In this document: in pieces, positions 14,925 to 55,986 of the stretch
How positions within the stretch are numbered: the first letter of the stretch is position 1
Layout: each line of letters opens with the position of its first letter
Origin: Dendrobates tinctorius
Lineage: Eukaryota
Assembly (NCBI RefSeq): GCF_039654945.1
Contig: NW_027361684.1
Span: 75,206,001 to 75,270,000, forward strand
Length of the DNA: 64,000 bases
Direction: 5' to 3'
Program-made: the position numbers and the translations under genes
Notes under the pieces: generated by a model
Told to the model about the DNA's origin: nothing
Databases searched by the model: none
The model's input: the letters and a program-made list of their open reading frames with translations, nothing else

Positions 14925-17900
14925 ATGGGAGGAAAAACAGCAGACAAGAACATGCAGCAGAAGGACAAACTAATCAAGGATACTAGATGTGGTAAAGAGG
15001 ACCCAAGACAGGGTACTCAGAAGGAAGCTAAGAAAAAGGAAGCAAAACTTCTTTCCTGCATGCTGACCAACGCAAGAAGCCTGACCAATAAGATTGAAGA
15101 TCTGGAGTTGGTAATGTATGAGGTAAAATACGACATAGTAGGAATAACTGAGACATGGTTAGACGACAGCTATGACTGGGCGGCTAACTTGCAAGGATAT
15201 GATTTGTTTAGGAGGGATCGTAAAAAAAGGAAAGGGGGTGGAGTCTGTCTAGATATAAAGTCCACTTTAAAGCCCACACTAAGAGAAAATATACAAGAGG
15301 GAAATGAAGAGGTGGAGTCTCTATGGGTGGAGATACAAGGAGGGAAAAGTAATAAAATCCTCATAGGGGTATGTTATAAGCCACCAAATATAACAGAAAC
15401 CACTGAAAATGTATTATTGAAGCAAATAGACAAAGCAGCAACTCACAATGAGGTGATTATTATGGGGGACTTCAACTACCCCGACATAGACTGGGAAACT
15501 GAAACCTGTGTATCTCAGAAAGGAAACCAATTTCTGTCAGTGACCAAGGATAATTATCTGTCACAACTTGTGCAGGGCTCAACTAGAGGGACAGCCCTTC
15601 TGGACTTAATTTTAAGCAACAGGCCAGATAGAATAACAGAAGTACGAGTCGATGGGCACCTAGGGAACAGTGACCACAATATGCGAGGGGCGCCTGAAAA
15701 CTTCGAGGCCCACCCATGAAATCTTTTTTGCATGGTCTGGTTTTGCAATGCAATATGTTATTTAGTTAGTTGAATGGTCTCATGAGCAATCTGGATATAT
15801 TTTGATTTTTTTTGTTTCCGTTACAGCATTTTAAAGTTGGGTCGCAAGGCTGAAATATAGAAATGGAGAAGTTGGCAAAGCTCACACATCGGCTGTTGCA
15901 ATGGCTGCAATTCCACCTTCCACCAAGGTGCTTTTTCATCTGTGGGAATAGGTGATAGTCCGAGAGAGCCAAATCAGGGGAATAGGGTGGGTGCTGAAGC
16001 AGTTGGAAATCACAGGAGTGAATTGCCGCAGCCGATGTGTGAACTTTGCCAACTTCTCCATTTCCATATTTCAGCCTTGCGACCCAACTTTAAAATGCTG
16101 TAACGGAAACAAAAAAAATCAAAATAAAACCAGATTGCTCATGAGACCATTTAACTAACTAAATAACATGTTGCATTGCAAAACAAGACCATGCAAAAAA
16201 GATTTCATGGGTGGGCCTCGAAGTTTTCAGGTGCCCTTCGTAATACAATTCCACTTGTCCTTCAGTAAGGTGCCCTGGAAGGGGGTTACAAAAACGCTGA
16301 ATTTCAAGAAAGAAAAGTTTGATCAGCTTAGAGAGGACCTTCGCCGAATTGATTGGGACAATGTCCTCAAAAATAGGAGCACAGAAAATAAATGGGAAAT
16401 ATTTAAATCAGTTTTACACACCCACTGCGAGCTAGCCATACCTTACAGAAATAAAAGGGCTAGGAACAGAAGAACACCAATGTGGCTAAATAAGGATGTA
16501 AAAAGGGCAATAAATGACAAGAACAAGGCATTTAAGAAGCTAAAACAAGAAGGCAATGAAGAAGCATTAAAAAGTTATAGAGAAAAAACTAAAATGTGTA
16601 AAAAACAAATACATTTAGCAAAAGTGGAAACTGAGAGACTCATTGCTAAGGAAAGTAAAACAAACCCCAAACTATTCTTTAATTATATAAACAGTAAAAT
16701 GATTAAAATTGATGGTGTCGGCCCTTTAAAGAACAATGAGGGTGAAATCATAGAGAGCGATGTGGGAAAAGCAAATGTTTTAAATACTTTTTTCTCAACA
16801 GTCTTCACACAGGAAAAGGATTTTCTAGGGGAAATGCAGAGTGATAATGTAAACTCCCCATTAAGTATTACCTGCCTAACCCAGGAAAAAGTGCAGAACA
16901 GCCTTAGTAAGATTAAAATTGACAAATCACCAGGCCCTGATGGCATTCACCCTCGGGTATTAAGGGAGTTAAGTAATGTGATAGACAGGCCTCTATTCCT
17001 TATATTTAAAGACTCTATAGAAACAGGGACTGTTCCTTTTGATTGGCGGCAAGCAAATGTGGTACCAATATTCAAAAAGGGGTGTAAAAGGGAACCTGGA
17101 AACTATAGGCCGGTAAGCTTAACATCTGTTGTGGGTAAAATTTTTGAAGGGTTTCTAAGGGATACCATTATGGAATATCTCAATGTTAATAAATGTTTAA
17201 CTCCATATCAACATGGATTTATGAAGGATCGTTCCTGTCAAACTAACCTGATCAGCTTCTATGAGGATGTAAGCTCTCAAATGGACCAAGGAGAATCATT
17301 GGATGTCATTTATCTCAACTTCTCTAAAGCATTTGATACTGTCCCACATAAAAGATTGGTAAGTAAGATGAGAAAGCTTGGGTTAGGGGAAAATGTGTGT
17401 AGATGGGTAGGTAGCTGGCTTAGTGATAGAAAACAAAGAGTGGTTATTAATTGGGCATACTCAGATTGGGCCAGGGTTACTAGTGGGGTACCACAGGGTT
17501 CTGTATTGGGCCCCCTACTATTTAATATATTTATTAATGATCTAGTGGATGGCTTACACAGTAAAATATCTGTATTTGCAGATGATAAAAAACTATGTAA
17601 GGTAGTTAACACAAAGGAGGACAGTTTGCAAATACAGACAGATTTGAGTAAATTGGAGAATTGGGCTGAAAAATGGCAAATGAGGTTTAACACAGATAAG
17701 TGTAAGGTTATGCACCTGGGAAGGAGAAACAGATGCTGCAATTACTTACTAAATGGGAAACTGCTGGGGAAATCAGACATGGAAAAAGACTTAGGCATCT
17801 TAGTCAATAAGAAATTGGAGTGCCCAGTGTCAGGCAGCTGCCACCAAAGCAAATAGGGTCATGGGATGCATTAGAAGAGGTGTGAGGACACGAGATGAAA

Positions 17901-18388
17901 ACATAATTCTCCCTCTGTACAAATCACTCGTCAGACCACACTTGGAGTATTGTGTGCAATTTTGGACATCGGTGCTCAAGAAAGACATTACTGAACTTGA
18001 AAGGGTTCAAAGGCGGGTTACTAAAATGATAAATGGAGTTGGTTCACTACAATACCCAGAAAGGTTATCAAAATTAGGTCTATTTTCTCTAGAAAAGAGA
18101 AGACTTAGGGGAGACCTAATATATATGTACAAGTATATCAGAGGGCAATACAGAGATCTCTCCAATGAACTGTTTGCACCAAGGACTGTGACAAGAATAA
18201 GACGGCATTCTCTTCGTTTGGAGGAAAGACAATTTCTGCACCAGCATAGAAGAGGGTTCTTCACGGTAAGAGCAGTGAGGCTCTGGAATTCTCTTCCTGA
18301 GGAAGTGGTGATGGCCAACTCACTGAATGAATTTAAGAAAGGAATGGATGCTTTTCTTGTGAGTAACAGTATAGAAGGTTACAAATAA
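14925..18388 (+). pseudogene. CR1 ORF2 (APE endonuclease-reverse transcriptase), disrupted
   Basis: Removing the 15684-16240 insert restores GNSDHN-I-IQFHLSF; frameshift near 17815 before KANRVMGCIRR. Confidence 0.9.
15684..16240 (-). mobile_element. Mariner-derived foldback MITE
   Basis: CGA(G/A)GG termini at a TA site; ~215-bp inverted arms; centre reads FQLLQHPPYSPDLALSDYHLFPQMKKHLGG on the minus strand. Confidence 0.9.
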
Positions 18389-19181: not shown

Positions 19182-22100
19182 TAATAATAATAATAATAAT
19201 AATAATCTTTATTTATATAGCGCCAACATATTCCGCAGCGCTTTACAGTTGAACAGTTTCAAACACAACAGTCATAAGTAACAACGTTAACAATACAATA
19301 ATTAAAGCGAAATAAGACGACCCTGCTCGTGGAGCTTACAATCTACAATGAGGTGGGGGGGATACAAAGCACAGGTTTGTATTTACAATGATGTATTTAC
19401 AATGACGGTCCAGCCATCTTCAGGGGGTGGGGGTTAGATGGAGATAGTGAATGGGCTACACACACACAAACATGACTTTGATTACTGAATGTGATAGGCC
19501 GCTCTGAACAAATGTGTTTTGAGCGAGCGCCTAAAACTATGCAAATTGTGGATGGTCCTAATATTTTGGGGTAGAGCATTCCAGAGGATTGGCGCAGCAC
19601 GGGAGAAGTCTTTGAGTCAGGAGTGGGAGGTACGGATTAGGGCAGAGGTTAGTCGAAAGTCATTTGCAGAGCGCAGCGGTCGGTTAGGCCGATAGACAGA
19701 AATGAGGGAGGAGATGTAAGGGGGTGCCGCACTGTGGAGAGCTTTGTGGGTGAGAACAAGTACTTTGAATTGTACCCTGTAATGAATTGGCAGCCAGTGT
19801 AACGACTGGCGAAGAGCGGACGCGTCTGAGAAACGATTAGCCAGATGGACAACCCTGGCTGCTGCATTAAGGATAGACTGGAGAGGGGAGAGTCGAGTGA
19901 GAGGGAGGCCAATTAATAGAGCATTACAGTAGTCTAGGCGGGAGTGGATCAGGGCGACAGTGAGAGTTTTTGTTGTTTCCATGGTGAGAAAAGGGCGGAT
20001 TCTAGAGATGTTCTTTAGGTGTAAGCGGCATGAGCGGGCAAGAGATTGTATATGGGAGGTGAAGGAGAGATCGGAGTCGAACATAACACCCAGACAGCGC
20101 ACCTGCTGTCGGGGTGTTATTATGGTGCCACCCACAGAGAGGGAAATGTCAGATTTAGGGAGGTTAGTAGATGGTGGGAGCAGAAGAAGTTCAGTTTTGG
20201 AGAGGTTGAGTTTCAGATAGAGAGCAGACATGATGTTGGAGACTGCAGACAGACAGTCAGTGGCGTTCTGTAGTACAGCGGAGGTAAGGTCAGGGGATGA
20301 TGTGTACAGTTGTGTGTCATCAGCATAAAGATGGTACTGAAAGCCAAATCTGCTGATGGTCTGTCCAATTGGGGCTGTGTAGAGAGAGAAGAGAAGGGGG
20401 CCAAGGACTGAGCCCTGAGGTACCCCAACAGTGAGAGGAAGAGGAGATGAAGTGGAGCCAGAAAACAGAACACTGAAGGAGCGGTCGGAAAGATAGGAGG
20501 AGAACCAGGAAAGAGCAGTGTCCTTAATGCCTAGTGACTGGAGCCTAGAGAGTAGGAGAGGATGGTCAACAGTGTCGAAAGCTGCAGAAAGGTCGAGAAG
20601 AATGAGCAGAGAATGGTCACCATTACATTTTGCTGTCAGAAGGTCATTGGTCACTTTGAGTGCAGTTTCTGTCGAATGTAGGGGGCGGAAACCGGACTGT
20701 GAAGGGTCTAGGAGGGAGTGAGTGGAGAGGTAACGGGTAAGGCGTGAGTATATCAGGCGCTCCAAGAGTTTAGAGATGAAGGGGAGATTGGAGACTGGTC
20801 TGTAGTTGTTTGTGCAGGATGGGTCAAGGGTGGGTTTCTTTAGTAATGGAGTAATGATAGAGTGTTTGAAGGAGGAGGGGAAAATGCCAGAGGAGAGGGA
20901 GAGATTAAAGATTGTAGTTAGGTGAGTTGTGACGACTGGGGAGAGAGACTGGAGGAGATGTGAGGGAATGGGGTCGGTTGTGCATGTAGTTGGACGAGAA
21001 GAGGAGAGGAGCCTGGAGACTTCTTCTTCTGTGATGGGAGCAAATGTGGAGAGTGAGCCAGGGGAAATGCAGGGAGGGATGGGAGTCACTGAACTTGGTG
21101 ATTGGGAGCGGATTTCCTGACGGATATTGTCTATTTTCTCTATAAAGTGGGAGGCCAGGTCATCAGCGCAAATGTCTGTGATAGGGGCTTGTGCTTTTGG
21201 CCTGAGGAGGGAGTGAAAGGTGTCAAAAAGTTTCTTGGGGTTGTTGGATAGTGAGGAGATCAGGGTGGTGAAGTAGGTCTGTTTGGCGAGGTGAAGGGCA
21301 GAGTTATATGTCCTTAACATAAATTTGAAGTGTATGAAGTCTTCTGGTGTGTGTGTTTTCCTCCATAAGCGTTCAGCACACCTAGAGCATCGCTGGAGAA
21401 ATCGGGTTTGCGATGTGAGCCAGGGCTGTTTCACTCTGTGTTTGGAGGTTCTGAGGGTGAGGGGAGCTACTTGGTCAAGGGTGCTTCTAAGAGTGTCATT
21501 GAAGTGATGTACAGCCAGATCAGGACAGGACAAAGAAGAGATTGGGGACAATGATGAGTGTAGGGAGTCTGAAAGTGTATGAGGGTTAATGGCTTGTAGA
21601 TTTCTGACTGAATGGTAGGTAGGAGGGTGCTGGGGTGAGCGAGGATTTGTGAGTGTAAAGGAGAGAATGTTGTGGTCAGAGAGGGGAAGCGGTGAGTTAT
21701 CTAGGTAGGAGATTGAGCAGAGCCGGGCGAAAACCAGGTCCAGGGTGTTACCGTCTTTGTGTGTTTCAGAGGTTGAGAGCTGAGAGAAGCCTAGAGAAGT
21801 GGTTAGTGATAGAAGCTGGGATGCAGATGTGGAAGTGGGGCTGTTAATGGGGATGTTGAAGTCTCCCAGGATAAGGGTTGGTAGTTCTGAGGACATGAAG
21901 TGCGGCAGCCAGGCAGAGAAATGGTCCAGGAAGTGGGTGGGTGAGCCTGGGGGCCGGTATATGACCGCTACTCTGAGGGAGAGGGGACGAAAGAGCCTGA
22001 TGGTGTGGACTTCAAAAGAAGGGAATGAGAGTGATGGAACTGAGGGGATGACCTGGAAAGTGCATTGTGGGGACAGGAGTATGCCGACTCCACCACCAGG

Positions 22101-22783
22101 TCTATTTGTCGGTCTCGGGGAATGGGAGAATTGTAAGCCACCATGGGAAATGGCAGCAGGAGAGACAGTGTCAGAATCCTGAATCCAGGTTTCCGTGAGG
22201 GCCAACAAATTCAGAGAGTTTTTCAGAAAGTAATTGTGTAGGAAAGGAAGCTTGTTGCATACAGACCGTGGATTCCAAAGGGCACAATTGAAAGAAGGAG
22301 ATGAAGGAGTGCAAGTGATATTAGTAAGATTATTAAGGTTTCGATGTGAGGTAGGGTAGGGGTTGAGGTTGGGGGATGGTGGACCGGGGTTGGGGGAGAT
22401 GTCCCCTGAAATCAGTAGGAGCAGGAAGATAAAGAGCAAGTAGTTTTTGGAATTGTATGAAGATTTTATGTGCAGTGTGTTTGGGCAAGATGGGCTGAGG
22501 CTTTTTAAGAAGGTGAGAAGTGCATGGGAGCTGTACATGGGAGAAGCAAAGAGAGAGGAGCTGATGTATATGAGTCGTGATGGAGGGGGGATTGGTCGGT
22601 GAAAGTGGATTGCAAGAGAACATAGGAGGATAGGAATAAAGCACATGGTTAAAAGGGACAGCAGAGTGTGGGTTACCTGACTCCTGTCCTGACTAACTGC
22701 CATGTAATAACTGCTGTATCCCGACGCTTATCTTCGTGACGCTTTGCTTCTGTGATGCGTGCACCCCCACATGCGTGCACCCC
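19182..22783 (-). mobile_element. Near full-length L2 LINE
   Basis: Long APE-RT ORF; 3' end TGTAAAGCGCTGCGGAATATGTTGGCGCTATATAAATAAA plus (ATT)n tail at 19182-19206. Confidence 0.96.
19617..22703 (-). CDS. L2 ORF: leader + 2A-like motif + APE endonuclease + RT (1028 aa; premature stop, natural end 19482)
   Basis: GDISPNPGP at aa 100-108; WNPRS, LTETW, GDFN, LSDH; [19 protein letters not shown]; frame continues past the TGA as LKDFSRAAPILWNALP...LKTHLF. Confidence 0.92.
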
Positions 22784-23666
22784 TATGGATGGTTCTAAAT
22801 TTATAGTCCAGACTGCAGGGTCTGAAGAGATGGATTGTGGGAACTGGTTGAGGATAATTTGGCAGCTGGGGTCAGCACACCAGGGTTTTTTTTTTTTTTT
22901 TTGACTAAAATTTGACTAAAATTAGACCCATAAGGAAATAGTTTTCCATAGTTTAATTTACTGTTCATACAATAGATCCAGGTTTACATGGTGATTTGCA
23001 TTTGAATGTCCTATTTTCTTTGTTTTTGTGAATTAAAATTATTCATTCAGGTCTATGGAATCCGCTAAAAATAGACGAAAAACAGAACACAAGCTTTTCC
23101 ATCTATATCTTTGTGTTCTACTGATTGATGGCACTGAAAAAATTTCAGGCAGTTCGTCTCCTTCAGTTTTTGAAAAAGAAATAACTACAGCGTGAATGGG
23201 AGAAAATGATATGAGTACCAGAGATGATGCAAATCAATTTGCTGGGAAATCTGCAGTGAATTCCAGTACCAGCAGAATGAAAAAGATTATAAATAGCTTA
23301 AGTTTTTTTTTTTTAAATAAATTGTGCTTCGAATTTTTAAATTTTAGAAAGTGACGGCTCTTTTTGTGCTTTTAGTAAGTGTTTACTATACTTTTTTTGT
23401 TACAGCACCGACAGGCAGTCCAAGACAATGCGTTCTTTAGGCAAACGCAAAGCCACGTCCTCATGTAGGAGATTATACTAGTAAGTACTTTATATTGTTT
23501 ATAAGCGGCATTACCATATGGTTTTCAAATATTTTTATTGATTTACATTATAATAAGAAAGGTAAGGTGAGAATGGGGAAAAATATGAGAAAAAATGTGA
23601 AATAAGGGGGTGTGGGGGGAATATGCATATCGTGTAAAGTCTGCCAACTTTTTTTATGCTATCTAA

Positions 23667-47067: not shown

Positions 47068-49150
47068 TCAAGGGCGGACATACTGCATTTGCAGCTGATA
47101 CAGCTGCAATGGGGTTCGGACGTGGAGGGGGACACTGCAAGGCGGCTAATAATGAAGGCAATCTGGCCTGTTTCTCTGACCTCGAGGCTCCGGGGGGCCC
47201 TGGCCAGATTGCTCTCATGTGCAGCAGGCAGGGAGCGATACCTGCAGCTCCGCTGCATACAGGAGAAAATGGCAGCAGAGCTGCAAGCATCCCTCCTGTG
47301 CTCCCTGCCCATGCTTCCTGTCTGACACAGCAGCATGGCTGGATGACGTCAGCATTTGTTTCAGATAGAAAGCTGCTGGCAATGAAGATGCTTCGGCTGT
47401 GGGGAACATGCAAAGAGGTGAGAGGTGTGTGTGTGTGTTTGTGTTGGTATTGGAGAGGTGTGTGTGTAGGTAGTGGAGAGGGCAATTATGGGAGTGGTGG
47501 TGGAGAAGACAATGATGGCAGTAGTTGAAAGGGCTATGATGGGGTGATTGGGTATAACAATGATGGGGTGGAGGAGAGGACAATGATGGGTGTGATGGAG
47601 AGAACAATGATTAGGGTGTTGGAGAGGGCAATGATGGAGGTGGTTGGCGAGAAAAATAATTGGGGTGGTGGAGAGGAAATTATGGAGGTGGTGGATAGGG
47701 CAATGATGGGGTGGTGGGGGGAAAATGATTGGGGTGGTGGAGAGGAAATTATGAAGATGGTGGAGAGGGCAATGATGGGAGTAGTGGGGGAGAAGGCAAT
47801 GATGGATGTGGTGGAAAGGACAATTATGGGGTTGTGGTGGAGAAGGCAATGATGGAGGTGGTGAAAAGGACAATGATGGGGTAGTGGGGAGAACAATGAT
47901 GGGTGGGGGAGAGGACAATGATGGTAGTGGTGGGAGAGAATGATAATTGGGGTGTTGGAGAGGGCAATGATGGAGGTGGTGGAGGAGATCAATGATTGGG
48001 GTGGAGGAGAGGACAATTATGGAAGTGGTGGAGGGGCAATAATGGAGGTGGTGGGGAAAACAATGATTGGGGTGGTGGAGACGGCAATAATGGGGGGTGG
48101 TGGGGAAAACAATGAATGGGGTGGTCGAGAGGGCAATAATGGATGTAGTGGAGAGGACAATGGTGGATGTGGGGGAGAGGACAATGAGGGATGTGGGGGA
48201 ATTGGGATGGGAGTAAGGGGGACTTATAATGGACTTATGAACAGGAGGAGGGGAGGAAGACATTAGATATGGATGTGAAATTAGTTGGGTGGTGGAGGAG
48301 ATAGCGTCCTCCTCATCTCACAATTCATTGTGATGCTATTGGGTGCTTAAAATTTATTGTGGAGAGTAGGGCGTTAGGTGCCTAGGACCCTTTATAATGA
48401 ACTGAAAGGTGGGAGAAGACTCTGTCAGGGACTTATAATGAATTGGGAGGTGGCGGAGATAGCATCTTCTCCCACCCCCAAATTCATTATGATACTACCA
48501 AGGACTTTTACTGATTGGAGGGACACAGGACAGGGACTAAGGCTATGTGTACATATTCTGGATTTGCAGGAGAAAATTCTGCTAAAGTGTTGTCAGGTAG
48601 AATGCTGCGTAAAACACATTTATTTTTTTACATAATTTTGCTACGTATTTTCCCCCATTAGTACATGTGAAATAAGCTGCAATAATTGACATTATGCAGA
48701 TTTGAATTTGCTGAAAATCTGCAAGGAAAAAATAAGCAACGTGTGCATGAGACTTCAGGGATCTCATTCACTTTGCTTGTACTGTAAAACCTTGTGTACT
48801 TTCCTAGCCTTACAGTTAATTGGGCAGAGTCAGGGACTGAATAATTTATCTTATTGGGTGGCAGAGAATATAATTAATGAGGGGACAAAGTGCTGTTTAT
48901 CACTTTATATTTTCAATGGTGGGGTACATATCTGTATTGAGGGGGAAGACATAAGAATGTATACAATATATGTGACCTTGTTATTTTCAGGGCTGCAATG
49001 ATCATCGTGACAAGATGAGTCGTGGCTGGGAGATATTGACCTGAAGGTCTGACCAGATGGAGAATAAACAGCAGAAAACGGTTCTAATTAGGTGAAATGT
49101 CTGCATTAAGTGCCTGGATGTAAATATTATTCTGTATCTCTTCTGTGTGA
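47068..49150 (+). mobile_element. hAT-like non-autonomous element with purine-rich minisatellite (47480-48260)
   Basis: CAAGGGCGGACATA terminus; homologous in inverted orientation to 54190-57497. Confidence 0.55.
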
Positions 49151-49299: not shown

Positions 49300-51485
49300 C
49301 ATATACACCATCCTTGCACTAACTCTTTGCATTCCATCTTAGCCCCTCTGTCCTTTCCTCTTCTATGTACAGTACTCATGCTCTTTTCACATTGCTAAAT
49401 TGCTCAGATCTATTCAGTCCCACCATCCAATGCAAGAGACGCTCTCACAAATCACTTAACCATCTGCTCATTCTCTCTATCCTCCTTCTCCTAGTCGCAG
49501 GAGATATCTCTCCCAACCCTGGCCCCTCATGTTATACTGTAGTAAGTTCAACCCCTCACCTACTACACTCAGAAACCCCTCAAATCTCATGAATATTCCC
49601 TGCATGCCATCTGTGTCTTTTAATTGTGCCCTCTGGAATTCTCGCTTTGTGTGTAATAAACTCTCCTTCATCCATGACTTCTTCCTTTCTGATTCTCTTA
49701 ACCTTCTGGTTCTTACTGAAACCTGGATCCATCAGTCAGACACCACCGCTGCTGCTGCTCTTTCATATGGTGGACTACACTTCTTTCACACCCCAAGATC
49801 GGACAATAGAGCAGGTGGAGGCATTGGTCTGCTCCTATCACCCAAATGTACCTTTCAGGTTATCCCTCAAGTACCCTCACTTATCTTCCCTTCTTTTGAG
49901 GTCCATGCTGTCAAACTCCTACATCCCCTTCTCCATGCAAGTGGCTGTTGTGTATCATCCTCCAGGCCCCTCCCATCAATTCCTTGATCACTTTGCAACC
50001 TGGCTTCCAAGTATTCTCTCCTGTGACATCCCCACCCTCATGGGAGACGTTAACATCCCCATTGCTTTTCCCCTCTCCCTGTCTGCTGCTCAACTTTTAT
50101 CTCTAACTATCTCCTTCGGCCTTTCACAGCTTACTAATCTCCTATGCATGAAGACGTATAACGCCCCTGCTGGCATCACTGCATGGCTTTCCATCTCCCA
50201 TCAGGCAGATATACCATCTTACTTACCTCTCGGGGCCATGCTGTGAGTTCTTTCCTCTGCCTACTACATGCTGTGAACCTCATGTCCTTGCTTGCTGCAT
50301 ACTTCCTAACTGTATGCTTAGGGTGGCAGCGCTGGCATTTCCTGAGTCTTATAGAGACAGTGTGCACACCCATAATTTGGCCCCAGCCAACTGCCAAGAG
50401 GTATCGGGTACTTAAGGCATCTCCACCCATAGGGAGATGCCTGAGCAACAAACTCAGTCTGCACTTTGCTACTGAGGTGCCATTTCTTGTCCTGTTCTCC
50501 CTTCCTGGGGGCTGCATACCCAGGCCTGTTTCTGTGCTCTTAGTGTCTTGTTTCTGTCTTCCTGGAGGTTGCATACCCTGGTCCGTATCCTCCATCCTGA
50601 ACTTGTTCCCGTGTCCGTCCTTGCCTGTACTAAGTCTGTTTCTTGTACCTGTTCATATTCTTGCCTGTTTCCTTCCCTACTCAGCTGTGTATAGCCTTGT
50701 GTCTTCTCCTTCTGCTCTGCTCTCCACTGTGCCGTTCTGCTTTGCTCTTTGCTCCGTGCCCTGCGGTTCTGCTCTGCTCTCCACTCCACTCCCTGCGACT
50801 CTGCTCTGTTCTTTGCTCCACACCTTGCGGCTCTGCTCTGCTCAGCACTCTGTGGTTCTTCATCCTTCTAGTCTGAACTGGTTCCTAACAGTTCCTGTCC
50901 CTCCAGTCTGAACTGGTTCCTACCTGTTCCCTTATCCTACTTGTACCTGCCTGTGCTCCTGCCCTACCCATAATGGTTCTGGTTTCTCCAGTCTGATCTG
51001 TGCCGACCTGCCTGCCAGAGTGCCAGCCGTGCCTGCCTGCCAGAGTGCCAGCCATGCCTGCCTGCCTGCCAGAATGCCAGCCATGCCCGCCTGCCCGGCG
51101 AGCGTTACAAGATGGAAACTCCCTCGACTTGGCTTTCTCCCGGCTTTGTTCACTCTATGATTTTACCAACTCCCCTCTCCCGCTCTCTGACCACAACCTT
51201 CTTTCATTCTCTGTCAAGAACTGCCATCTCTCTTAGGACACCCCCACTTTCCACACTTTTATAAATATACAGGCCATTAACACCCAAAAACTGATGAAGA
51301 ATATGCAGTCATCCCTGGCCCCAATCTCCTCCCTCTCATGTCTTGACTCTGCACTGATGCATTATAATGTAACACTGCAATGTGCCCTGGATGAAGCTGC
51401 ACCTCCTATACATAGAACAACTTGGCACACACTGCAAACACGTTTCCTACAGTGGTGCTCCAGGTGCGCTGAACTTCTGTAAAGA
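49300..51485 (+). mobile_element. Degenerate L2 5' portion (leader, 2A-like motif, APE) split by an LTR
   Basis: MYSTHALFTLL...[15 protein letters not shown]; FNCALWNSR, LTETW, GDVN, DGNSLDL, PLSDH. Confidence 0.9.
50157..51109. mobile_element. Solo LTR inserted in the L2
   Basis: TATAACG...CGTTACA; TSD AGACG / AGATG; removal restores HEDGNSLDL. Confidence 0.85.
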
Positions 51486-52359
51486 AAATCCAGTCTCGGG
51501 AGACCAAGTATAAGCTTTATTATTTTATGGGGGCCAAGCATGGGGTATGAGAATTTGTCCAAGTAGTGGACAACTCCTTTAACATCTTACCAAAAATAAC
51601 AATAGCATACATATACAATGTAGACTTAGCAGCAATGATCACAGAATGTAACAAGGCTAATAGTTTAAAGCTAAATGTTTTGGTGTGTTACAATGGATCA
51701 TATTTCTTGGGAAAAGACTGTATTTTCAGAAAAGCAATGTGTCCTGAAGTGATTTAATAGAAAAAAAGAAGACGATCAATGTTTCATCAACAATATTTAC
51801 TTCTCTCGAAAGTAAACTTGCAGTTTAAAGTTCTTTTAAGTGACACTGAAAGCAACCCTTGGAGGCTTCTTATGTTTGCTGTAAGGTTATAAATGAGATT
51901 AAACAACAGTATCTAGTTCTTTGGAGAAACGATAGATGGCCAGTTCTGTGTCTACATAAAAGTCGTTTGAAGAGTTTATGTGATGTTAGTTAAAACTATT
52001 ACATGTTCATTGTTCGGTATAATTCAGCAACTGTGAGTGGCTGAGCTCATGGCTATGGAATTAGATGAAAATTCTTTATTGTTTAGGGAAGAAAAGAAAT
52101 GTTAGAGAAAATGCTGTATCAGTTATCAGTGACAATATCAAACAAGTGTAAAGAGAAAAAAAATAAGAGTTTTGTCTGCAGTATAATACTATTGAAAACC
52201 ACAGGTAATATCAGATGAGCACAGAGAGTCATAAGCTTATATATAATGGTTGTGTTTGGGTAGGCATAATTCTAATTAAAGGCAGATGAAAGAACCCAAA
52301 CTGTGCAGCCGCTAAGCTCCAGTGTCATGGGCATCCTTCCCAACAGATCCTCTCAGACA

Positions 52360-52896
52360 GGGGCGGAGCTTACATTTCTGAATAATATGTGCAACTGTAG
52401 TCACAGGAACATCAAGCTGCTTGGAGATGGCTTTATAACTATTACCTTTGACATGTTTGTCTATAATTTTCTTTCTAATCTCCTGAGACAACTCTTTCCT
52501 TCTCTTCCTCTGGTCCATGTTGAGTGTGATACACACCATGTCACCAAACAGCACAGTGAGTATCTGTAGCCCTCTATACAGGCCCACTCACTGATTCCAA
52601 GATTGTAGACACCTGTGATGCTACTTTGCTAATTAGTGGGCACACCTTGATTTAACATGTCCCTTTTGTCACATTATATTCATGGGTACCATCATTTCTG
52701 TCCTGGCCTATTTCATGAGTTTTATTTTTTTTGTAAATTTTGTGGAAGCATGGTTGAAAAGCAATGTCTGACTTTCATTTGTTCATTTTCATAGATTTTT
52801 GATTCATTTTACTTTTGTCAGATTCAAGTTATTTCTGTCACCATTGTGGGTTTTTCTGTCATTAAACGAGGGGTACCACAATTTTGACCACGTGTG
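52360..52896 (-). mobile_element. Tc1 left end with transposase N-terminus
   Basis: MDQRKRRKELSQEIRKKIIDKH...YKAISKQL. Confidence 0.85.
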
Positions 52897-54420: not shown

Positions 54421-55986
54421 CAGTCATGGCCAAAAGTTTTGAGAATGACACAAATATTATATTTTCACATGATCTGCTGCCCTCTGGTTTTTATGTGTGT
54501 TTGTCAGATGTTTTTATCACATACAGAAATATAATTGCAACAATATTATGAGTAACAAAAGGTTATATTGACAGTTAGAATGAGTTAATGCAGCAAGTCA
54601 ATATTTGCAGTGTTGACCCTTCTTCTTCAGGACCTCAGCAATTCTCCCTGGCATGCTCTCAATCAACTTCTGGATCAAATCCTGACTGATAGCAGTCCAT
54701 TCTTGCAAAATCAATGCTTTTATTTTGTCTGAATGTGAAGGTTTTTGTTTGTCCACCCGTCTCTTGATGATTGACCACAAGTTCTCAATGGGATTAAGAT
54801 CTGGGGAGTTTCCAGGCCATGGTCCCAAAATCTCTATGTTTTGTTCCCTGACCCATTTAGTTATCACCTTTGCTTTATGGCAAGGTGCTCCATCATGTTG
54901 AAAAAGGCATTGTTGATCGCCAAACTGCTCTTGGACGTTGGGAGAAGTTGCTCTCGGAGGACATTCTGCTACCATTCTTTATTCATGGCTGTGTTTTTAG
55001 GCAAGACTGAGAGAGAGCCCATTCCCTTGGCTGAGAAGCAACCCCACACATGAATGGTTTCAGGATGCTTGACAGTTGCCATGAGACAAGACTGGTGGTA
55101 GCGCTCACCTCGTCTTCTCCGAATAAGCCGTTTTCCAGATGTCCCAAACAATCGAAAAGGGGATTCATCAGAGAAAATGACTTTACCCCAGTCCTCAGCA
55201 GTCCACTCCCTGTACCTCTTGCAGAATATCAGTCTGTCCATGATGTTTTTTCTGGAGAGAAGTGGCTTCTTTGCTGCCCTCCTTGAGACCAGGCCTTGCT
55301 CCAAGAGTCTCCGCCTCACAGTGCGTGCAGATGCACTCACACCTGCCTGCTGCCATTCCTGAGCAAGCTCTGCACTGCTGGTAGCCCGATCCCGCAGCTG
55401 AAACACTTTTAAGAGATGGTCCTGACGCTTGCTGATCTTTCTTGGGCGCCCTGGAGCCTTTTTGGCAACAAGGGAACCTCTCTCCTTGAAGTTCTTGATG
55501 ATGCGATAGATTGTTGACTGAGGTGCAATCTTTCTAGCTGCGATACTCTTCCCTGTTAGGCCATTTTTGTGCAATGCAATGATGACTGCACGTGTTTCTT
55601 TAGAGATAACCATGGTTAACAGAAGAGAAACAATGATGCCAAGCACCAGCCTCCTTTTAAAGTGTCCAGTGGTGTCATTCTTACTTAATCATGACAGATT
55701 GATCTCCAGCCCTGTTCTCATCAACACCCACACCTGTGTTAATGGAGCAATCACTGAAACGATGTTAGCTGGTCCTTTTAAGGCAGGGCTGCAATGATGT
55801 TGAAATGTGTTTTGGGGGATAAAGTTCATTTTCTAGGCAAATATTGACTTTGCAAGTAATTGCTGTTAAGCTGATCACTCTTTATAACATTCTGGAGTAT
55901 ATGCAAATTGCCATTAGAAAAAATGAAGCAGTAGACTTTGTAAAAAATAATATTTGTGTCATTCTCAAAACTTTTGGCCATGACTG
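54421..55986 (-). mobile_element. Full-length Tc1-like DD35E transposon (transposase 55613-54598, disrupted)
   Basis: TA TSD; TIR CAGTCATGGCCAAAAGTTTTGAGAATGACACAAAT; [19 protein letters not shown] with 35 residues between D and E; stop and frameshift near 54940-54970. Confidence 0.93.

Follow-up and report, generated by a model that had tools for sequence, protein, structure and literature searches.

Two long interspersed nuclear elements (LINEs) of the L2 type, here called L2a and L2b, lie on opposite strands of a 64,000-nucleotide (nt) stretch of the Dendrobates tinctorius genome (contig NW_027361684.1, positions 75,206,001 to 75,270,000; this whole stretch is referred to as the window, and all positions are counted from its first letter). 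In both of them the coding region opens with a leader of 53 or 54 amino acids (aa) that ends in a 2A-like motif, with a putative skip site between Gly and Pro (G|P). How LINEs with a single open reading frame (ORF) cope without ORF1, and what purpose 2A-like leaders serve, are open questions in the field. Judged from sequence, the leader is tripartite, with an 11-residue N-terminal block (block N), a spacer of fixed length and free sequence, and a ∼27-residue cassette of the 2A/StopGo type. The frog leader would then be more than a 2A motif, in that it carries a selected N-terminal block whose spacing to the stall site is fixed.

In L2b, the ATG at 49365 starts a 75-aa ORF on the plus strand, the first 54 codons of which (49365–49526, Met1 to Pro54) translate into the leader, with the skip site at Gly53/Pro54. 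Block N (49365–49397, codons 1–11, MYSTHALFTLL) is a predicted helix. It is followed by the variable polar/basic spacer (49398–49445), recognized by lineage identity and by the ratio of nonsynonymous to synonymous differences per site (pN/pS), and by the 2A part (49446–49526), which comprises a basic/His stretch, a 13-residue Leu-rich helix and the core GDISPNPGP (49500–49526; GDISPNP at 49500–49520, the final G and P at 49521–49526). A pyrimidine-rich segment of 27 nt (block U, 49338–49364), conserved with L2a and other frog L2s, adjoins the ATG on its 5′ side. Downstream of the leader, the remains of the region of the apurinic/apyrimidinic-type endonuclease (APE) were identified at 49527–50234 by homology to L2a and to frog L2 proteins; they align at 67–84% identity and contain frameshifts, of which the first, within about 20 nt past G|P, stems from an indel of 8 nt against L2a and the other lies near 49925. 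The fragment is interrupted by ∼870 bp of short tandem repeats (50235–51107, plus strand), whose units of 25–35 nt are CT/GC-rich; ∼26 codons of L2 homology occur on both flanks. The final L2b-homologous piece (51108–51563, plus strand) extends to approximately residue 419 of a Ranitomeya relative. Reverse transcriptase (RT) was not found in the L2b fragment, homology stopping near 51563 (∼residue 419). L2b is evidently a dead, 3′-truncated 5′ fragment of an L2-clade APE+RT LINE.

The second element, L2a, is nearly intact and occupies 19485–22886 on the minus strand, with a 5′ untranslated region (5′UTR) of ∼350 nt and an ORF running from 22703 or 22538 to 19617 that contains both APE and RT domains. 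Its endonuclease matched Pfam PF03372 (Exo_endo_phos) and PF14529, and its reverse transcriptase matched RVT_1 (E=1e-36) in the same ORF, so that L2a is by all appearances a single-ORF APE-type LINE. The 53-aa leader lies at 22380–22538, with the ATG at 22538, block N at 22506–22538 and the core GDISPNPGP at 22380–22406 (GDISPNP at 22406–22386, G-P at 22385–22380). Block U of L2a lies 5′ of the ATG at 22539–22565; related copies mostly have Pro at codon −7 and Leu at codon −4, giving ISPSLL. The ORF is closed by an in-frame TGA (19617–19619), and homology to a 1044-aa Phyllobates L2 protein extends in frame to ∼19485; the copy is without the ∼44 C-terminal codons usual for its family, the conserved tail lying beyond the TGA. 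The closest proteins to L2a came from the poison frogs Ranitomeya, Dendrobates and Phyllobates, and RT proteins of frog, fish and platypus were also among the nearest. The 3′ tail is presumably of the L2 type, and the L2 clade label leans partly on this assumption rather than on an RT phylogeny. L2a and L2b are ∼66–68% identical in DNA and are sister lineages among frog L2s in a tree of N-terminal regions (support 91/95). The backbone of this tree was not resolved, and one origin of the Met state could not be distinguished from two. When all 64 kb were translated in six frames, G[DE]x[SE]xNP with GP after it turned up at the two L2 5′ ends and nowhere else.

The two leaders were then compared codon by codon. 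Identical residues occupy 27 of the 53 positions, and 18 of these 27 are written with different codons. Identity at first, second and third codon positions was 35, 41 and 22 of 53, respectively, which is a coding-type pattern. Synonymous sites were saturated everywhere the two elements were compared (pS 0.70–0.85), and because of this saturation the shared residues would reflect selection on the ancestral lineages, not descent alone. The original prediction, namely that a second, divergent L2 keeps the same leader and 2A-like motif by means of different codons, is thereby borne out, both peptides being present. It should be noted that all codon-level tests used the L2a/L2b pair and a table of variants from public-run contigs, rather than a multi-species dN/dS.

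Constraint within the leader is distributed unevenly. Block N has 8 of 11 residues in common between L2a and L2b, with a pN of 0.12, a pS of 0.70 and a pN/pS of 0.17. Synonymous changes were counted at 5 of ∼7 sites versus nonsynonymous changes at 3 of ∼26 (Fisher P=0.004); by identity alone, a Monte-Carlo test with 8 random substitutions reached the observed 8/11 in 8% of trials (P=0.08). Elsewhere, pN/pS was 0.59 for codons 12–25, 0.28 for codons 26–53 and 0.26–0.42 for APE, so that the value of block N is at least as low as that of the endonuclease domain. Codons 12–25 are polar/basic, only 21% identical and near neutral. Block N is, on these figures, apparently under purifying selection at the protein level. 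A ratio near 1 upstream of the motif, which had been named as the outcome that would speak against a function of the leader, was not observed for codons 1–11, and the spacer codons came nearer to it.

Comparison among lineages gave a similar division. Identity in residues 1–25 was 12–48%, the minimum of the whole ORF, compared with 50–75% in the 2A part and 59–71% in APE; conservation of the 2A part equals or exceeds that of the endonuclease domain, and outside the enzyme domains no part of the ORF is better conserved over the eight or more anuran families compared. The earlier claim of conservation ∼45–50 residues ahead of G|P therefore needs to be narrowed, as it holds for block N and not for the first 25 residues as a whole. 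Among frog L2 proteins, block N reads (Met/Tyr)-x-x-(Ser/Thr)-His-(Ala/Glu/His)-(Leu/Phe)-x-x-x-Leu; in the form (Met/Tyr)-x-x-(Ser/Thr)-His-x-Leu-x-x-x-Leu, it recurs in Bombina, Leptobrachium, Gastrophryne and two further frog sequences. Its invariant His sits 46–48 aa ahead of the skip-site Gly in 10 sequences from seven anuran lineages, whereas the linker past G|P can be anything between 29 and 48 aa long.

Variation among copies of the L2a family was examined in Logan contigs of four public runs (X2, X11, X13 and X20) from two related organisms, placed on the L2a 5′ kilobase at a likeness of at least 80%. The family was extremely abundant in these contigs, with word depths of 10^3–10^5 over 21800–22900. 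The stretch also occurs in runs guessed to be RNA, and presence in contigs does not prove transcription. Copies in the runs differ from the L2a of the window mostly by A<>G (plus strand). Among the best-supported variants relative to L2a (40 of 126 variant sites), 19 of those 3′ of the ATG were synonymous and 4 were replacements. Within the leader, these sites comprise synonymous variants at codons 11 (twice), 39 and 51 and replacements at codons 13 and 24, both in the spacer; for codons 1–11 and 26–53, the differences among these best-supported 40 of 126 sites were solely synonymous.

AlphaFold2, run on the leader alignment, predicted helices at residues 2–13 and 26–43 with a disordered spacer, at a low mean predicted local distance difference test (pLDDT) score of 62. 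Structure prediction, which had been proposed as a check on the leader, thus yields two helices at low confidence. No match could be found in Pfam for the leaders or for the 158-aa extended N-terminus, even at E=10; the Protein Atlas gave no leader match above 0.87 and was uninformative, and a word search with L2a residues 1–100 returned one match only.

The 2A-like core, D-I-S-P-N-P-G-P, fits the consensus D(V/I)ExNPGP at 7 of 8 positions. The exception is the Glu position, where both window copies and most frog L2s carry Ser and Gastrophryne carries Ala, while G-D-I...N-P-G-P is invariant across lineages. Ahead of the Asp stands LLLL(V/I)(A/S)G, within the predicted helix 26–43, where hydrophobicity is high (maximum Kyte-Doolittle 3.5–3.7 over 9 residues). 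The basic KRRSHK... stretch, a 13-residue hydrophobic run beginning at residue 34 and then V-A-G give this part a signal-like n/h/c layout. Leaders of this general kind are already known. According to Odon 2013 (PMC3708506), elements of the L2, Rex1, Crack, CR1 and Ingi groups, among them an L2 of Xenopus tropicalis, have 2A-like sequences 40–80 aa into ORF2, counted from its N-terminus, and the presence of 2A correlates with loss of ORF1 (PMC3708506; PMC3894237). The 2A-like L2 leader is accordingly of a published kind, and L2b is an ordinary further case of it. Like the L2 elements covered in that work (X. tropicalis, S. purpuratus STR-51/69 and N. vectensis; PMC3708506), the frog element has a single ORF with the motif 40–80 aa in and upstream of APE, a Leu-rich stretch followed by G-D-(V/I)-x-x-N-P-G-P, and a Glu position of the type that is often substituted; it differs in carrying Ser (Ala in Gastrophryne), a non-conservative substitution of the sort that the paper scored as inactive. 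A fixed-spacing N-terminal block and a conserved block ahead of the ATG are not described in the main text of Odon 2013, as far as it was accessible. We consider as new here the tripartite layout, the selection acting on block N, its constant spacing, the pre-ATG block and the ambiguity of the start codon; no paper describing any of these for L2 was found in a literature coverage that is incomplete.

Several other systems share parts of this design. In the trypanosome LINEs L1Tc/Ingi (Heras 2006, as cited in PMC3708506), a 2A likewise opens a single APE-RT ORF and is functional, being thought to down-regulate the ORF2 protein (ORF2p); these elements differ in belonging to another clade, in their canonical core and in a dissimilar upstream leader. 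The ‘2A-like signal sequences’ of sea-urchin NLR proteins (Roulston 2016; PMC4981915) also join a hydrophobic stretch to a 2A core in an n/h/c layout and have dual fates depending on the skip. They are 26 aa long and occupy the very N-terminus in a cellular immune gene, whereas the frog leader belongs to a retrotransposon and has ∼33 extra residues before the hydrophobic run. Similar in context are the viral StopGo sequences of the ‘LLLLSG-like’ upstream class and the poly-Leu ‘stall-helix’ 2A-likes (PMC12846837; PMC13405545), which resemble the frog leader in LLL(I/V)(S/A)G before the Asp and in a helix at about −19 to −10. In a screened set of eukaryotic 2A-likes, this Leu-rich helix at −19 to −10 drives skipping and lowers protein abundance, most retrotransposon cases being of the reducing type, and 20 residues span the distance to the second tunnel constriction (PMC13405545); ∼13 residues are ordered in a structure of F2A on the ribosome (PMC12846837). 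The viral StopGo cores differ from the frog core in that position 14 is almost always Glu and rarely His, and residues −42 to −52 are not addressed in these papers (PMC12846837; PMC13405545). For the Ser core of the frogs, either the poly-Leu context would tolerate Ser, or partial activity or throttling would itself be selected. A core that would be called inactive on viral data, yet is conserved in eight or more anuran families, offers a natural case for the context dependence of StopGo position 14.

The motif is also far from confined to this locus, in contrast with the possibility raised at the outset that other L2 families lack it. An exhaustive protein search that used L2a residues 1–130 gave 146 new representatives, 60 of which have a 2A-like core. 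Leaders of the frog type (KSHSHL...) were found in eight genera, comprising Discoglossus, Bombina, Rhinophrynus, Mantella, Anomaloglossus, Leptobrachium, Gastrophryne and the dendrobatids; given this spread, the 2A cassette is evidently old in Anura, the early-branching Bombina and Discoglossus included. A separate family of leaders, of the form ...YY.NS.ATFQL.LL.SGD(V/I)xPNPGP with Ser, His, Asn, Asp or Gln at the Glu position, was identified outside frogs (representatives P0200, P0158, P0125, P0053, P0113 and P0199, the last from the brittle star Amphiura filiformis). These non-frog leaders are 69–80 aa long and consist of a classical signal-peptide-like N-terminus, a Cys-containing spacer, the YY.NS.ATFQL context and a 2A-like core. 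L2 elements may thus have arrived repeatedly at a design in which a 2A comes after a hydrophobic N-terminal helix.

Conservation is not limited to the coding part of the leader. Block U, that is, the 9 codons 5′ of the ATG, is 67–71% identical between L2a and L2b, compared with 33% for the next 16 codons upstream. Read in frame, it gives ISPSLL in Bombina, Leptobrachium, Anomaloglossus, two further sequences and most copies of the L2a family. When the two elements are compared, third positions agree at 6 of 8 in block U (background 40%; P=0.05) and amino acids at 3 of 9; in codons 2–11, third positions agree at 5 of 10, amino acids at 7 of 10 and second positions throughout. Small as these numbers are, they give block U the look of a nucleotide element and block N that of a translated peptide. 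The start codon itself may differ between lineages. In L2a, AUGs in frame with the leader stand at −165 and −108 nt, and the one at −108 has A at −3; the AUG of MYSSH itself has a weak context (C at −3, T at +4). The 5′UTR of L2a (22539–22886, minus strand, ∼350 nt) begins past an A-run at ∼22890–22905 and also contains an AUG at −234 in frame, opening a 14-codon upstream ORF, and an AUG at −85 out of frame, opening an overlapping ORF of 96 codons. In L2b, the frame ahead of the leader is closed by a TAA at codon −15, AUG is missing from −202 to 0, and gene models of the L2b subfamily in Phyllobates and Ranitomeya begin at MYS. In Leptobrachium, Bombina and one further sequence, an in-frame Met occurs 39–42 codons upstream in the same aligned column and is followed by a hydrophobic run. 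The strand is pyrimidine-rich, and open frames with Leu/Phe/Ser/Pro-rich translations are expected by composition alone. An RNA hairpin around the AUG was rejected as a cause of the conservation, as the region was less stable than its shuffles (z +1.05 and +0.94).

The reading that we favour, at about even confidence, is that the L2b leader is the coding 5′ end of a dead L2, that its cassette would stall the ribosome at Gly-Pro, and that block N would act in cis during translation. By its putative StopGo activity, the cassette would halt the ribosome at Gly-Pro, after which either the leader would be freed and translation restarted at Pro, or the output of ORF2p would be throttled, as has been reported for L2 and further LINEs with one ORF. 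At the stall, the nascent chain would be 52–53 aa long, with block N ∼40 codons behind and situated at or just beyond the exit port. Past the second constriction, the tunnel holds roughly 10–30 more residues depending on helicity. The stall may then provide a timed window in which an exit-site factor, such as one like the signal recognition particle (SRP) or the nascent polypeptide-associated complex (NAC), or a membrane could engage block N, and the spacer may keep its length and not its sequence because of a geometric constraint on the exposure of block N at that moment. We also put forward, as a rather improbable extension, that L2 leaders are timed devices in which an N-terminal helix, signal-peptide-like in echinoderm-type L2s and weaker in frogs, would be exposed at the exit during a 2A-type stall ∼40 codons on. 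The mRNA would thus be captured before a separate ORF2p chain is made, which could replace ORF1 for cis-preference or localisation, and the pyrimidine block and shifting start could tune the dose of leader.

A number of points weigh against the favoured reading. The statistics of block N come from 11 codons of one nucleotide pair, one member of which has decayed. Block N is weakly hydrophobic (maximum Kyte-Doolittle 1.3–1.4 over 9 residues), which makes it a poor substrate for SRP. The conserved island crosses the ATG (codons −9 to +11, 67–73% identity), and the leader Met is replaced by Tyr in Bombina, Gastrophryne and two further sequences and by Leu in Anomaloglossus. Non-conservative changes at the core Glu position were inactive in Odon 2013 (PMC3708506), although L2-type 2A-likes with Gln, Asp or Asn there were active in the same study, and in deep mutational scans of P2A/F2A only His among the Glu substitutions stays active (preprint 10.64898/2026.09.24.754024). 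The original prediction had taken the conservation to suggest that the leader peptide has a function of its own. Protein-level constraint far upstream of the skip site does support some function, and an independent one of the released peptide is possible; yet the island crosses the ATG, the Met is variable, and a cis co-translational role of block N would fit the observations equally well and is at least as likely as a free peptide.

Four alternatives have to be set against this reading. The released peptide of ∼52 aa might be a small trans-acting protein with two helices, associated with membranes or with RNA or ribonucleoprotein, that substitutes for ORF1. The protein-level constraint on block N agrees with this, as do the predicted helices and the basic spacer, and Odon 2013 argued that functions ahead of 2A may reside in a separate, more abundant product, with 2A tracking ORF1 loss. 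Nevertheless, residues 1–25 are the least conserved of the ORF and the spacer is nearly neutral; the Met varies among frogs, no relative was found in Pfam or the Atlas, and fold confidence is low, so that we regard a free protein as unlikely. We judge it similarly unlikely that initiation takes place at an in-frame AUG farther 5′ and the true leader is longer (∼90–108 aa), with an N-terminus that is strongly hydrophobic and signal-like; the Met considered here would then be internal or a secondary start according to lineage (secondary in L2b, for example). In support of this, L2a has the AUGs at −165 and −108 and a weak context at MYSSH, the upstream Met at 39–42 codons with its hydrophobic run is shared by Leptobrachium, Bombina and one further sequence, block U is conserved in frame, and the 69–80-aa leaders outside frogs start like signal peptides. 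On the other hand, L2b is closed by the TAA at codon −15 and free of AUG from −202 to 0, the Phyllobates and Ranitomeya models begin at MYS, open upstream frames are what a pyrimidine-rich composition would produce, and block U, in keeping 6 of 8 third positions and 3 of 9 amino acids, behaves more like nucleotide sequence than like protein.

That last property leads to the alternative that conservation around the start reflects a nucleotide signal, formed by the pyrimidine tract and the first codons, that controls initiation on an mRNA with upstream AUGs and not a peptide. It would account for an island from −9 to +11 codons at 67–73% against 33% farther upstream, for the third positions of block U (6 of 8), and for a region that is G-poor and unstructured. 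It fits poorly with codons 2–11, where second positions are unchanged throughout, third positions agree at 5 of 10 and pN is 0.12 against a saturated pS of 0.70, and with the copy-to-copy differences in block N, which are synonymous only; taken together, this codon pattern and the synonymous-only differences would therefore indicate a translated, constrained peptide, and we hold a pure nucleotide signal to be quite improbable. A marginally better chance, still a poor one, is given to the view that the Ser core no longer skips and the leader stays fused to ORF2p as an N-terminal extension or signal-anchor, or that mixed dual targeting occurs as in sea-urchin NLR. Fixation of Ser/Ala at position 14 of frog L2s, at a site where viral Glu is nearly intolerant of change, would suit such a loss, the basic stretch, the 12–13-residue hydrophobic run and the small residues before the Asp resemble n/h/c regions, and a dual function of sequences of this kind was shown by Roulston 2016 (PMC4981915). 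However, NPGP and Gly-Asp-Ile are invariant despite saturated synonymous divergence, which a simple signal sequence would hardly account for, variants with Gln, Asp and Asn are active in Odon 2013, and a hydrophobic region beginning at residue 34 is atypical for a signal peptide.

Some other features of the window may be mentioned. Three further NPGP strings, at 17467 (minus strand), 30906 (plus strand) and 35305 (plus strand), read ‘...SNPGP’ and were rejected as not 2A-like, being part of another repeat; two of the three are near-identical repeat copies that end in ...VPLSNPGP followed by a stop. A minisatellite with ∼30 copies of a 24-nt unit (AGGTGGTGGAGAGGACAATGATGG type) occupies 47468–48200 and produces long spurious ORFs on both strands. 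A further LINE, probably CR1-like and with 25–28% protein identity to L2s, was identified at 15057–18388 on the plus strand; it contains an RT-bearing ORF of 562 aa (16168–17856), followed by one of 175 aa (17861–18388). Downstream of L2b, pieces of a Tc1/mariner-like transposase ORF are present at 52312–52587 and 54598–55646 on the minus strand.

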